Shown here: positions 31,325-51,761 of the stretch, in pieces
Numbering within the stretch: the first letter of the stretch is position 1
Layout: the number at the start of each line of letters is the position of its first letter
Assembly: GCA_002269645.1 (NCBI GenBank)
Contig: NIVC01000433.1
Coordinates: forward strand, 131,418 to 195,417
Direction of reading: 5' to 3'
Length of the DNA stretch: 64,000 nucleotides
Source of the DNA: Macrostomum lignano
Taxonomy: Eukaryota
Translations under genes and position numbers: made by a program
The notes under the pieces: generated by a model
The model's database searches: none
Seen by the model: the letters and a program-made list of their open reading frames with translations, nothing else
What the model was told of the DNA's origin: nothing

Positions 31325-31921
31325 CTATTCGTCGTCGAACGCCTTCTGCACCAGCTCGCTGATGGTGGTCATGGTGAGGTGGCCGAAGGTCCTGGCCACT
31401 TTGCCGGAGTCGCAGTCGCCGCCAACCACGTGCACCAGACGGACTCGAAGCGTGACTGGCACCATGGGGTCCTCCTCCAGGATGTTGCTGCGCATCTGGC
31501 TGGTCAGGTCGATCCTGCCGGTGAACACGTCCAGCCGCGTGGCTCCGCCCTTGCCTTGGCTTGTCAGTTTCACCTCGACGTAGACGGACTCGCCAAGTTT
31601 ATCCTGAATATCCGAGAGGCTGCGCAGAATTTCGGTGTGCACCGGCTCGCAGGTCAGCTGGATCAGCGCCTTCTGCCTGCCGCTCGGATCGTTGGACGAT
31701 TTGGCTTCGAACTGCAGGCTCTTGAGCGTGAATGCAACGTTGGCGTAGATTCTCAGACTGGGCACTGTGAACAGCAGTTCTCTTAGCGACTTTGCCGACG
31801 GGCCCATCGAGATGCGGCCGGTTAGTCCGAATCCGGCTCGCCGGCTGAGACTTCGGCAAGAGGAGTTTTCTAGCTGGATATCCGCGGGGTCAGCAGCTAC
31901 TTCGCTGGCTTCATCGCTCAT
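31325..31921 (-). CDS. Hypothetical single-exon protein, 198 aa
   Basis: Non-repetitive open frame with GC-rich codon usage like the other exons. ATG at 31921 lies 6 nt after an acceptor-like CTACCAG. No family recognised. Confidence 0.6.
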   Translation of the reverse strand: MSDEASEVAADPADIQLENSSCRSLSRRAGFGLTGRISMGPSAKSLRELLFTVPSLRIYANVAFTLKSLQFEAKSSNDPSGRQKALIQLTCEPVHTEILRSLSDIQDKLGESVYVEVKLTSQGKGGATRLDVFTGRIDLTSQMRSNILEEDPMVPVTLRVRLVHVVGGDCDSGKVARTFGHLTMTTISELVQKAFDDE

Positions 31922-32119
31922 GGCATTCTGGTAGCAAGTCGCTTGAGTTAACTCGGCTATCCATGGCTCACTTATATAGCTACCCAATGTAATTGTCTTG
32001 ACATCTGCATATACCAGCCACTGCTAATGCCACAGACAATTCTGCAAATCTGATCGACCAAGTTGTTGCAGCAGCATCCTTGTCCATCTTTATTGCCATA
32101 AAACAAAATATCGGTTTTT

Positions 32120-49500: not shown

Positions 49501-51761
49501 TTCTGCCCACACAAATTCTGTCAATTTTTTATACTTCGCACCTAAGTACTCAGAATAAATTTTGTGCAGTTTGCGTGCACTGTCTTTCTGACAGAGCGAA
49601 TGGCAGATACAGGCAATATAAAGTGTGATAATTACTGTTTAAGAGTTGCAACTTTTATAGCTGTTGTAGTAAAATTGTCAGGAGAAGGGAGAGGGAGAAG
49701 AGAGAATAGAGGAAAGAGAGGGAGGGGAGAGATGAGAGGGGAGATAAGAGGGAAGAAGGCTAAGAAGAGAGAGGGGAGAGGGCAAAGGGGAGAGGAGAGA
49801 GGGGAGACGGGAGACGAGAGAGGGGGGGTGAGAGGGGAGAGGAGATAGGAAAGAAGGGAGAGGAGAGAGAGAAGGGGCGAGAAGGGGAGAGGAAAGAGGG
49901 TAGAGGAGAGAGGGAATAGGGGATATAGAGGAAAGAGATAGGGGAGAGGGGTGAGGAGAGAGGAGAGAGGAAGATAACCGTGAGGAGAGGCCACCCTCCC
50001 ACAAAAAGCTGCTTTTAGCCCAACGCAAACAAACAAAGCGATCAAAGACGCTCCCCAACGCCCAGCGGTCACAGACTGCGCCAACGGCAAATGAACGCTT
50101 GCTCAGTCAGCCCACCAGAAATCTCACACAGGATCTCTCCCAAAGGGCCGAGCAAGCAGACTGAGAGTACATGTATAACACAGCGGAGAATACCAGCAGT
50201 GAACACAACCGCACACAGAGAAAGAGAGAGAGAGAACACGATACCACAAAATGGAATATAAATTTTGGCATCATAAACTTGTACCGCAATAAATGATAGC
50301 CGCCATTGCTCCGCTGTAAAGGCTAAAAACATTTGCATATTGCCTAGTTGCGTAAATTTACTGCCGACCCAGGTCAATCAGATGCACACACACATGGGCA
50401 CACACACAATCTTATTCATTTTCACAATCCTGGGCTAACAAACAGACGGATCTTAGATTTCAAATTCTGAGTATTGTTGAGTTGCTCAAAGGATTGCTTG
50501 AAAAAAGGCACAGGCACAAAGAGAAAACAGCGATCGAGTTGACATTTATCTGATGAAGAATGGATGACTACAGACAAAGATGCTTAGGCTAATGATGACA
50601 TGTGAAACTGATATCCAGATGTATATTAGTATATTTTTAGAATTGCACTAATTATCCGTTGATAGGCGGGCAACAGCTCATGCTTGTCATATCTGTGGCC
50701 TATGAGACTGAATATTATTTATGAATATGAATGATTATGGATGACTATGGAATAATGAACGATTTTTGATTGATTAAAGCGTCTTAAATTATTCTGATGT
50801 GACGGTTTGCGGCTAGCTGTCATCCTCTGTCAGTGATGAGGCGGGTTGGTATGATAGAGCAGGAGAGGATTCAGCTGACTGAGAATGGAAAAGTGATGGT
50901 GAGTCAGGGAGAGGACAGTGAGTCAGGGAGGGGAAAGTGTGTCAGGGAAGGCACAGTGAGTCAGGGAGGCGATAGTGAGTCAGGGAAGGCACAGTGAGTC
51001 AGGGAGGGGAAAGTGAGTCAGGGAAGGGACAGTGAGTCAGGGAGGGGACAATGAGTCAGGGAGGGGACAGTGAGTCAGGGAGGGGACAATGAGTCAGGGA
51101 AGGCACAGTGAGTCAGGGAGGGGAAAGTGAGTCAGGGAGGAGACAATGAGTCAGGGAAGGCACAGTGAGTCAGGGAGGGGACAATGAGTCAGGGAGGGGA
51201 AAGTGAGTCAGGGAGGGGAAAGTGAGTCAGGGAGGGGAAAGTGAGTCAGGGAAGGGACAGTGAGTCAGGGAGGGGACAGTGAGTCAGGGAGGGGAAAGTG
51301 AGTCAGGGAGGGGACTGTGAGTCAGGCAGGGGACAGTGAGTCAGGCAGGGGACAGTGAGTCAGGCAGGGGACAGTGAGTCAGGCAGGGGACAGTAAGTCA
51401 GGCAGGAGACAGTGAGTCAGGCAGGGGACAGTGAGTCAGGCAGGGGACAGTGAGTCAGGCAGGAGACAGTGAGTCAGGCAGGAGACAGTGAGTCAGGCAG
51501 GGGACTGTGAGTCAGGCAGGAGACAGTGAGTCAGGCAGGAGACAGTGAGTCAGGCAGGAGACAGTGAGTCAGGCAGGGGACAGTGAGTCAGGGAAGCAAA
51601 GCACCCGAGCATACCGTATTGACTTGCGCAACAGGTCCAGTAATGTCCATCATCGCTGCTCCAACCTCGAAGCCTTGAACGGCAGAAATTGTTGACAAAA
51701 TACAGAACGCGATCATCAGGATCAGAGCCATCGGCAGCTTCCAGTGCCAAATTGTCTGCAT
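40592..51761 (-). CDS. ASAH2: Neutral/alkaline ceramidase (ASAH2/CDase family), 13 exons: 51761-51615, 49255-49115, 48078-47902, 46838-46711, 46309-45968, 45779-45644, 45202-44858, 43888-43751, 43674-43585, 43016-42729, 42648-42505, 41541-41282, 40788-40592; about 844 aa
   Basis: Signal peptide, then DITGP...MGYA, GLHIRLFCRAF, SATHTHAGPGG, VHGTS, SGDNKG, GDVSPN, AGTADG, PTEVTTMAGRRL, GLSNGY..YVTTEEEY, YEAGATLFGPHTL, NPRH, WDIPAGQRPGDYRIGYRG. One junction (42729/42648) has a phase mismatch. The symbol denotes the family. Confidence 0.9.
41570..42490. repeat. About 19-bp minisatellite (TGGGTCAATGATGGAGAAA) in a ceramidase intron
   Basis: Tandem copies that grow more regular toward 42490. Confidence 0.93.
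43205..43500. repeat. 24-bp minisatellite (GAGAGGCGCCAATAATGAGTGAGT)
   Basis: About 12 copies, intronic. Confidence 0.93.
43990..44800. repeat. Degenerate about 35-bp repeat (GCGACCTTGGAAAGACCCCACCTCCCC)
   Basis: Intronic tandem copies; explains several spurious P/G-rich ORFs. Confidence 0.88.
45255..45610. repeat. 23-bp minisatellite (GGCATCTAGAGATATATCTATGA)
   Basis: Intronic tandem copies with palindromic cores. Confidence 0.9.
46870..47875. repeat. (ACTA)n tetranucleotide microsatellite, about 1 kb
   Basis: About 250 nearly perfect units filling ceramidase intron 3. Confidence 0.98.
48185..49020. repeat. 25-bp minisatellite (TAGGGCGCCATTCTAACACTATATC)
   Basis: About 33 copies in ceramidase intron 2. 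Confidence 0.95.
50899..51595. repeat. 19-bp minisatellite (GTGAGTCAGGGAGGGGACA)
   Basis: About 36 copies next to ceramidase exon 1. Confidence 0.95.

Follow-up and report, generated by a model that had tools for sequence, protein, structure and literature searches.

A neutral ceramidase gene and two lineage-specific genes as a possible spliced-leader operon in the flatworm Macrostomum lignano

Across 20.6 kb, the window (the whole stretch of 64,000 nucleotides that was analysed) is 100% identical to NIVC01000433.1 (copy L002) of the Macrostomum lignano assembly Mlig_3_7, for which NIVC is the accession series (PMC5730564). The minus strand of this locus carries three genes in head-to-tail order, a neutral ceramidase (gene 1), gene 2 and gene 3, and GenBank annotates each of them as a separate CDS (Table 1). 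A sequence-only reading of this DNA had described a ceramidase, a coiled-coil gene and an orphan ORF, all on the minus strand and closely spaced; the three annotated CDSs and the CDS-to-CDS gaps of 793 and 1206 nt bear out this arrangement. When the minisatellites (TRF arrays) are subtracted, the gaps are 506 and 638 nt. Transcript-to-transcript distances must be shorter still than these CDS-to-CDS values. The same gene calls are found at all three near-identical copies of the locus (L001, L002 and L003), with no gene between the neighbours, and a convergent kinase gene with a KA1 domain forms the 3′ boundary of the cluster. Over the three genes and both gaps, the unique sequence of the three copies is 98-100% identical in each compared block. 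Since the copies are this similar (>99% in unique sequence), conservation gives no means of telling functional signals apart from neutral DNA. An Rfam scan, a tRNA scan and a search for the spliced leader (SL) sequence gave no match in the window, which thus holds no SL RNA gene.

Table 1. Positions in the window of the genes and sequence features of the locus
Feature	Position	Strand	Remarks
Gene 1, neutral/alkaline ceramidase CDS	40592..51761	-	annotated 835 aa; ~13 exons counted by eye
Ceramidase exon 1	51615..51761	-	ATG 51761, donor GT 51614-51613, read from sequence
Ceramidase last exon	40592..40788	-	Ser-rich stretch, then hydrophobic tail; stop 40594-40592
Intergenic stretch 1	39799..40591	-	793 nt, 506 nt repeat-adjusted; would hold ceramidase 3′UTR and spacer
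Minisatellite in intergenic stretch 1	40063-40349		287 nt
AATAAA	39899..39904	-	sole AATAAA in intergenic stretch 1; 106 nt before gene 2 ATG
ATTAAA, second candidate poly(A) signal	39864..39869	-	AATAAA in copy L001
Candidate gene 2 trans-splice acceptors	39805..39835	-	AGs ending 39834, 39827 (site of the sequence-only reading) and 39805; none matches [T/C]TNCAG
Gene 2, Q-rich protein, 569 aa	33128..39798	-	CDS range and length from annotation; coiled-coil look by eye
Gene 2 predicted exons	39798-39524, 38632-38369, 36180-35906, 35381-35140, 34359-34091, 33512-33128	-	inferred
Intergenic stretch 2	31922..33127	-	1206 nt, 638 nt repeat-adjusted
Minisatellites in intergenic stretch 2	32107-32568 and 32937-33042
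AATAAA	32089..32094	-	sole AATAAA in intergenic stretch 2; 173 nt before gene 3 ATG
TTGCAG (within aTTTGCAG)	32042..32047	-	sole acceptor in boundary 2 spacer matching the published trans-acceptor motif
TATATAAG, consensus TATA box	31971..31978	-	between second AATAAA and gene 3; last base 50 nt upstream of gene 3 ATG
CTACCAG	31928..31934	-	gene 3 acceptor of the sequence-only reading; exon would start at 31927
Gene 3, intronless, 198 aa	31325..31921	-	identical CDS annotated on two contigs
ATTAAA	31306..31311	-	begins 14 nt after gene 3 stop codon
Protein kinase gene, convergent	23775..29729	+	called gene L002:12193-18147; Pkinase and KA1 domains

The called ceramidase gene contains both PF04734 and the C-terminal domain PF17048, and its end at L002:1330 corresponds to position 40592 of the window. 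Ceramidase-like ORF segments occur across 49.3-41.3 kb. Exon 1, MQTIWHWKLPMALILMIAFCILSTISAVQGFEVGAAMMDITGPVAQVNT, reads as a signal peptide that passes into the ceramidase N-terminus, and the intron before the last exon was placed at 41281-40789 from the best of the splice pairs leading to the annotated stop codon (CAG/GTAAAC at 41282 and CCTCAG/ACG at 40788). When exon 5 was used as a query in a word-index protein search, only three distant fragments were recovered, and these match PF04734 proteins. ASAH2 transcripts in the 2016 de novo transcriptome (Grudniewska 2016) do not carry the flag TRANSSPLICED; their lengths of 2417 and 750 nt fall short of a CDS of 835 aa, so that they cannot be tied to the locus. 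Published supplements were searched for a per-gene flag of trans-splicing or transcription unit and have no entry for the locus; the accessible part of the Grudniewska 2018 supplement, searched for the same flag, has no ceramidase entry.

For gene 2, the predicted exons are the top-scoring chain among nine GT-AG solutions that yield exactly 569 aa. Gene 2 has no Pfam domain, a PDB sequence search returned no relative and only a low-complexity match, and a word-index protein search with its exon 1 gave no match. We rejected the idea that gene 2 uses gene 3 as an alternative 3′ exon; in the predicted exon model, exon 5 has a phase 2 end, and its junction with 31927 would give A-ATG-CCA-TGA and stop at once. 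The word-index searches for gene 2, gene 3 and the ceramidase yielded neither transcript-derived proteins nor orthologues.

Gene 3 has no Pfam match at E ≤1, and as a query in the word-index protein search it recovered its own locus only. A paralogue of 162 aa (P0008) aligns with it at 29% identity over ~150 residues (E 6e-16), and the two proteins share the motifs RELL, PSLxIY, TCEP and TGRxxLxSQ. By this alignment gene 3 is a member of a small lineage-specific family, and the label of an orphan, which the sequence-only reading had given it, has to be dropped because a diverged paralogue exists elsewhere in the genome. The paralogue has an intron and stands alone between genes of the opposite strand; the gene 3 family thus needs no operon for expression. 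An AF2 model of gene 3 reached pLDDT 33 from the single sequence and 55 in a two-sequence run, with a core at ~70-77, and Foldseek found no significant match for the model in the PDB. Gene 3 gives many weak per-repeat matches to giant bacterial DUF11 proteins, with individual E values from 5e-7 to above 1. Its assignment to the bacterial DUF11/CARDB-type beta-sandwich repeats was rejected, given the Pfam and Foldseek results.

Both boundaries between the genes were read directly and scanned by script. At the boundary of the ceramidase and gene 2, the AATAAA hexamer reported by the sequence-only reading is present, at 39904-39899 instead of 39903-39898, a displacement of one base. The second candidate poly(A) signal lies closer to gene 2, and a single difference within this hexamer in copy L001 swaps one canonical signal for another. 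In L001, whose sequence is shifted relative to the window around the minisatellite, intergenic stretch 1 is 1301 nt long, and repeat expansion probably accounts for the greater length. The acceptor GAGTTTAG is found as described, with its AG at 39828-39827, as is the gene 2 ATG at 39798-39796. If this acceptor were used, the terminal ATG of the SL would open an out-of-frame uORF of 21 codons; at acceptor 39805, the SL ATG would be in frame with the gene 2 ORF. From the poly(A) signal to the gene 2 ATG we counted 10 AG dinucleotides, and we found no TATA-like element at this boundary, by reading or by scripted scan.

Intergenic stretch 2 is identical across the three copies except for one indel in L001. 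Here the AATAAA at 32094-32089, the AG of CTACCAG at 31929-31928 and the gene 3 ATG at 31921-31919 all lie where they had been reported. With trans-splicing at CTACCAG, the terminal ATG of the SL would be in frame with gene 3 (MNAMSDE...), and four of the five upstream ATGs would be removed. An exact look-up of this SL-initiated product of 201 aa found none on record in a collection that seemingly holds only genome-derived calls for M. lignano. The TTGCAG acceptor starts 47 nt downstream of the first AATAAA base (32094); its use would give a 5′UTR of 120 nt with several upstream ATGs. The spacer from poly(A) signal to gene 3 ATG contains 14 AG dinucleotides. As to the independent promoters that the sequence-only reading had set against an operon, TATATAAG is a TATA candidate before gene 3, and its position makes an own promoter possible for this gene; boundary 1 has none.

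In order to judge the spacing of these signals, chance levels were determined. An AATAAA lies 60-200 nt upstream of 7.5% of all minus-strand ATGs of the window, and mononucleotide shuffles of the two intergenic stretches gave 6.6% and 7.4%. The chance is therefore ~7% per boundary and ~0.5% for both boundaries jointly. No canonical hexamer lies nearer to either stop codon than the AATAAA signals in the two gaps scanned. With poly(A) sites placed from the hexamers only, ~50-150 nt would be left between the likely cleavage site and the following ATG. The acceptor motif is less informative. YTNCAG occurs 380 times in the window compared with 341 expected, and we rejected it as a discriminator because it is too common. 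The two acceptors of the sequence-only reading, GAGTTTAG and GCTACCAG, do not match [T/C]TNCAG, a motif which is itself neither necessary nor rare. These acceptors had been presented as unpaired; both AG sites exist, but with 10 and 14 AGs available the argument carries no weight alone.

M. lignano has a single SL of 35 nt (...TTGCATG) and thousands of SL-resolved operons (PMC8629364), in agreement with the earlier statement that SL trans-splicing occurs in flatworms; CGGTCTCTTACTGCGAAGACTCAATTTATTGCATG is the SL sequence that marks SL-containing reads. About 30% of the genes undergo SL trans-splicing and ~15% lie in operons. To be called an operon, neighbouring genes need a trans-spliced downstream member and a repeat-adjusted spacing of <1 kb; the mode of this spacing is near 100 bp. 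Operons of two or three genes make up 93% of the total (75% two-gene, 18% three-gene), [T/C]TNCAG as the top trans-acceptor motif covers 44% of sites, and 70% of trans-spliced genes have human homologues (all from PMC8629364).

Strand, adjacency and distance (<1 kb) at the locus correspond to the structural half of that operon criterion (PMC8629364). We tentatively read the three genes as an ordinary SL-resolved operon of the kind known genome-wide in M. lignano, a reading to which we give somewhat less than an even chance. The species, the order and strand of the genes, their spacing, the location of each poly(A) hexamer and the candidate acceptors were observed directly; from the sequence we infer co-transcription, the poly(A) sites used, SL addition and the choice of AG. 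Transcription would start from a promoter at ~51.8-52.2 kb, upstream of the ceramidase ATG, and yield one minus-strand pre-mRNA that spans all three genes. The 3′ end of the ceramidase mRNA would be made by cleavage and polyadenylation immediately behind AATAAA 39904 or ATTAAA 39869, that of the gene 2 mRNA by cleavage immediately behind AATAAA 32094. Genes 2 and 3 would each be capped through trans-splicing of the 35-nt SL to an AG lying 6-120 nt ahead of the ATG. ATTAAA 31311 is likely the end of the transcription unit, which would stop short of the convergent kinase gene. In favour of the operon we count the sole AATAAA close to the next ATG at both gaps, as poly(A) signals lie in operons, and the in-frame SL ATG at CTACCAG for gene 3 and at acceptor 39805 for gene 2, as well as the hexamer at 39869, which stays a canonical signal despite its difference in L001. 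Against it we count the absence of [T/C]TNCAG from the acceptors of the sequence-only reading, although only 44% of real sites match this motif. The TATA box before gene 3 and the stand-alone position of its paralogue also weigh against the operon. Neither gene 2 nor gene 3 has a human homologue, and ~20% of non-conserved M. lignano coding genes are trans-spliced compared with 30% overall (calculated here from published fractions); this lower rate also counts against an operon for these two genes.

In Caenorhabditis elegans, operons have intercistronic regions of ~100 nt and downstream genes receive SL2. The locus has the same succession of poly(A) signal, short spacer, 3′ splice acceptor and ATG, with ~50-165 nt from signal to acceptor. 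Unlike C. elegans, M. lignano has one SL without SL1/SL2 specialisation, and flatworm SLs end in ATG and can provide the start codon. The closest resemblance is in layout, to the operons described in the same species and assembly (Wudarski et al. 2017, PMC5730564; Ustyantsev & Berezikov 2021, PMC8629364), which are defined by SL on downstream genes: one strand and repeat-adjusted gaps <1 kb. In PMC8629364 the gaps are likewise inflated by minisatellites, the first gene of our locus is conserved, and its three-gene size is shared by 18% of operons; in contrast to typical trans-spliced genes, 70% of which have human homologues, its downstream genes are lineage-specific. Candidate polycistrons of parasitic flatworms (Calvelo et al. 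2025, PMC12582326) are also same-strand clusters resolved by an SL ending in ATG. The gap limit used there was ≤300 bp between gene models, whereas the gaps given here run from CDS to CDS and mature-mRNA gaps are inferred.

If real, the operon would be one among ~4,000 operons inferred in the species (our own estimate from published counts) and would add no new principle. Its value would be that of a worked example, in which a conserved sphingolipid enzyme heads a unit with lineage-specific downstream genes, minisatellites inflate the intercistronic distances and the ATG of the SL is placed to serve as the start codon of gene 3. Co-transcription alone would not imply a functional link between ceramide metabolism and two small proteins, and we found nothing that shows a functional link of sphingolipid metabolism to these proteins, which the sequence-only reading had placed in one polycistronic unit with the enzyme.

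The same layout could arise without any operon, from three tightly packed, independently transcribed genes in which the AATAAA hexamers end long 3′UTRs reaching the next promoter and the 'acceptors' are chance AGs. We regard this as unlikely, if not strikingly so. Most M. lignano genes (70%) are not trans-spliced and lineage-specific genes are so less often, AG dinucleotides and YTNCAG are abundant, the two sites first proposed deviate from the published motif, and the ASAH2 transcript of the 2016 transcriptome lacks the TRANSSPLICED flag, though it is not attributable to the locus. Such packing would have to explain two consecutive short same-strand gaps, each with a sole AATAAA no more than 175 nt ahead of the following ATG, at the low joint chance given above, and the ~80 nt from the likely cleavage site to the gene 2 ATG leave little room for a promoter and 5′UTR. 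A mixed arrangement, which we consider less probable again, would have the ceramidase and gene 2 as a two-gene operon, or gene 2 as trans-spliced, while a compact TATA promoter (TATATAAG, 31978-31971) drives gene 3 separately, with a TSS near 31945 and without trans-splicing at 31928. The consensus TATA box 50 nt before the gene 3 ATG suggests it, and a start ~30 nt downstream of that box would drop four of the five upstream ATGs, as would the SL. It also agrees with the stand-alone paralogue, with the tighter spacing of boundary 1 (poly(A) signal and ATG 106 nt apart) and its lack of a TATA-like element, and with the predominance of two-gene operons in M. lignano (75%, PMC8629364). However, TATAWAWR has an estimated chance of ~8% in a 200-nt AT-rich stretch, making it no stronger than the AATAAA evidence, the literature searched holds no characterisation of M. 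lignano promoter architecture, and the sole canonical poly(A) signal of gene 2 is still only 116 nt upstream of the TATA box.

Two further readings concern gene 3 itself. It is very improbable that gene 3 is a chance open frame in the long 3′UTR of gene 2 or in intergenic DNA. The missing Pfam match, the word-index search without a homologue beyond the locus and a frameshift in the N-terminal part of copy L003 would fit a spurious ORF; this frameshift, however, falls within a run of CCCC that precedes the conserved core, and the paralogue alignment with its shared motifs and the folded core of the two-sequence AF2 model argue for a real protein. The transcript-based annotation by the assembly authors also calls the gene on all three copies. 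Somewhat less remote, yet still improbable, is that gene 3, an intronless copy of a Macrostomum-specific family, was retroposed or otherwise relocated to its place directly downstream of gene 2 and gained expression there with the help of SL trans-splicing. If true, gene 3 would be a concrete case of operon growth via capture of a promoterless young gene. With such a capture, the in-frame terminal ATG of the SL could supply the start codon.

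Three genes, a neutral/alkaline ceramidase, a 569-aa coiled-coil-like gene (gene 2) and a 198-aa ORF (gene 3), lie on the same strand, and at both boundaries between them the order AATAAA, AG, ATG described by the sequence-only reading was confirmed. That reading had proposed the three as a putative operon resolved by spliced-leader (SL) trans-splicing. M. lignano has a single SL of 35 nt, CGGTCTCTTACTGCGAAGACTCAATTTATTGCATG (PMC8629364), and every known flatworm SL ends in ATG (PMC12582326). Of M. lignano operons, 75% contain two genes and 18% three; an operon is called when trans-splicing of the downstream gene coincides with a repeat-adjusted distance of <1 kb, and the repeat-subtracted distance between trans-spliced genes peaks at ∼100 bp (PMC8629364). 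Pre-mRNAs bearing several trans-splice sites were reported earlier, in the genome paper (PMC5730564). The proposed phenomenon is therefore already established and catalogued in the same genome, and the operon interpretation of this layout is plausible as an instance of a known, common feature.

Coordinates of the gene cluster and associated features in the window
Feature	Position	Strand	Basis or remark
Ceramidase CDS	start 51761, stop 40592	-	annotated CDS
Last ceramidase exon	40592-40788	-	Ser/Ala-rich stretch, then hydrophobic tail; ends ...PESSSAGAAVNAGCIASAKVAQIMAIFWLLQMMTPLARL and stop
Gene 2, 569 aa	39798-33128	-	annotated CDS
Consensus TATA box, TATATAAG	31978-31971	-	50 nt upstream of gene 3 ATG
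Gene 3, 198 aa, single exon	31921-31325	-	annotated CDS
Protein kinase gene with KA1 domain	23775-29729	+	gene call; convergent on the cluster

Ceramidase and gene 2 are separated by 793 nt, including 287 nt of minisatellite (20-nt period), and gene 2 and gene 3 by 1206 nt, including 568 nt of minisatellite. The repeat-adjusted gaps, 506 and 638 nt from CDS to CDS, are both below the published 1-kb threshold (PMC8629364). Each gap contains a single AATAAA, 106 nt (first gap) or 173 nt (second gap) upstream of the next ATG, and no canonical hexamer was found closer to either stop codon in the two gaps. At the second boundary the AATAAA (32094-32089) and the ATG (31921) are exactly as first reported; at the first boundary the ATG (39798) stands, while the AATAAA lies at 39904-39899, one base from its reported position. 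Across the window, an AATAAA precedes 7.5% of minus-strand ATGs by 60-200 nt; shuffle expectations are 6.6% and 7.4%. Such placement at both boundaries together has a chance probability of ∼0.5% and is unlikely by chance. If these signals are used, cleavage would fall ∼50-150 nt before the next start codon, as in an operon layout.

The acceptor sites proposed earlier, an AG ending at 39827 and CTACCAG ending at 31928, are present; neither fits [T/C]TNCAG, the leading trans-acceptor motif (9551 of 21 754 sites; PMC8629364). With 10 AG candidates in the first spacer and 14 in the second, and YTNCAG ubiquitous, sequence alone cannot pick the acceptors. TTTGCAG at 32042 does fit the published motif and, if used, would give a 120-nt leader containing several upstream ATGs. 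Joined at 39827, the terminal ATG of the SL opens an out-of-frame 21-codon uORF; at CAG 39805 it is in frame with gene 2, and at 31928 it is in frame with gene 3 (predicted MNAMSDE...).

A full operon of ceramidase, gene 2 and gene 3, which would be defined by SL addition to genes 2 and 3 and by a common precursor, is our tentative preference, at a probability we put a little short of even. The TATA box before gene 3 could drive that gene independently; in that case ceramidase and gene 2 would form the operon and gene 3 would be transcribed from its own promoter, an arrangement we consider improbable. Three independent transcription units are somewhat unlikely, given the placement of AATAAA at both boundaries together. 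Genes without a human homologue are trans-spliced more rarely, at ∼20% by our own calculation from the fractions in PMC8629364. Whether operon or rival, nothing new in kind follows under any of the three readings.

The contig belongs to NIVC00000000. This accession is Mlig_3_7, an assembly of Macrostomum lignano, a free-living flatworm, and the authors' annotation was deposited with it (PMC5730564). Locus L002 (NIVC01000433.1) is 100% identical to the window along its entire 20,597 bases. Two more copies were found, L001 (NIVC01000177.1) and L003 (NIVC01000551.1), consistent with duplications already described for this line. All three copies carry annotated CDSs for ceramidase, the 569-aa gene and then the third gene (160 aa on L003), and the exact 198-aa product is annotated on two contigs of GCA_002269645.1. 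The copies are >99% identical in unique sequence (three genes and both gaps), so their comparison is uninformative on constraint. The hexamer at 39864-39869 (minus strand) is ATTAAA in the window and L003 and AATAAA in L001 (∼1455). Both signals are canonical, and this swap at 39869, the sole copy difference within a poly(A) hexamer, is an anecdotal hint that a signal may be maintained there. The ceramidase-gene 2 gap measures 1301 nt in L001 (224-1524) versus 793 nt in the window (39799-40591) and L003, and thus its length is not constrained; L001 and the window are offset around a 20-nt-period GGTGCAGAGGAGGAGGGGTG array, whose expansion probably accounts for the extra length.

For gene 2, an exact length of 569 aa is reached by just nine GT-AG exon chains, and a six-exon model is inferred as the best of them. 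The product is Q-rich with a coiled-coil look; neither a Pfam domain nor a PDB relative was found for it. Gene 3, previously called an orphan, has a paralogue in M. lignano: when all 1.84 billion representatives were scanned with HMMER, the 162-aa protein P0008 matched at 29% identity (E 6e-16). P0008 is encoded on other contigs (L004 10001-16290; L005 10001-11702) between opposite-strand genes and has one intron, whereas gene 3 is intronless. Residues ∼35-132 of gene 3 gave 15-30 weak matches to each of three giant bacterial DUF11/CARDB-type surface proteins (P0005-P0007; summed E 1e-36, single repeats 5e-7 to >1). DUF11 membership was rejected, the per-repeat matches being insufficient and no Pfam model matching gene 3; the resemblance could reflect distant homology of beta-sandwich type or else an artefact of composition. 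A two-sequence AF2 model had a moderately confident core and gave no significant Foldseek match. Gene 3 and P0008 define a small lineage-specific family to which no known fold could be assigned. On L003 a CCCC run in the N-terminal part (∼9920; window ∼31888) lacks 1 nt, so that copy is annotated as 160 aa from an internal Met; the deletion reflects either a homopolymer error of long reads or a genuine frameshift, located before the conserved core.

The ceramidase start at 51761 opens a signal peptide followed by a conserved N-terminus. Ceramidase-like exons extend as far as 41282, and the annotated stop is reached via the splice pair CAG|GTAAAC (41282) to CCTCAG|ACG (40788); the tail of the last exon looks like a GPI-anchor signal or C-terminal membrane anchor. 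In the eLife 2016 supplement (Figure 3 source data 1), the ASAH2 (neutral ceramidase) transcripts RNA1509_25115 (2417 nt) and RNA1509_34453 (750 nt) carry no TRANSSPLICED flag (PMC5173321). The former is too short for the 835-aa CDS and so possibly represents another paralogue or isoform; no entry traceable to this locus was found in the paper supplements searched, and look-ups in the protein collection gave genome-derived calls alone.

Many minisatellite arrays with periods of 17-47 nt are scattered over 30293-52889; copy number reaches 81, as at 36428-38338 (period 23). Both gaps between the genes and several introns of the ceramidase contain them, and gene 2 has at least one in each of introns 1, 2, 3 and 5. 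Long spurious ORFs result on either strand, e.g. 30239-31018 (+) and 33547-34323 (-). Elsewhere, an intronless 435-aa ORF at 3239-4546 (+) resembles a G-protein-coupled receptor of rhodopsin (aminergic) type, with DRY-like and NPxxY-like (NPVVY) motifs. Judged by eye, an ORF at 14510-15163 (-) is fibrinogen-C-terminal-like (WTTFQHRLDGSVNFNRSW...YWMGL) and ORFs at 19185-20689 (+) are similar to a degenerin/ENaC-type channel.
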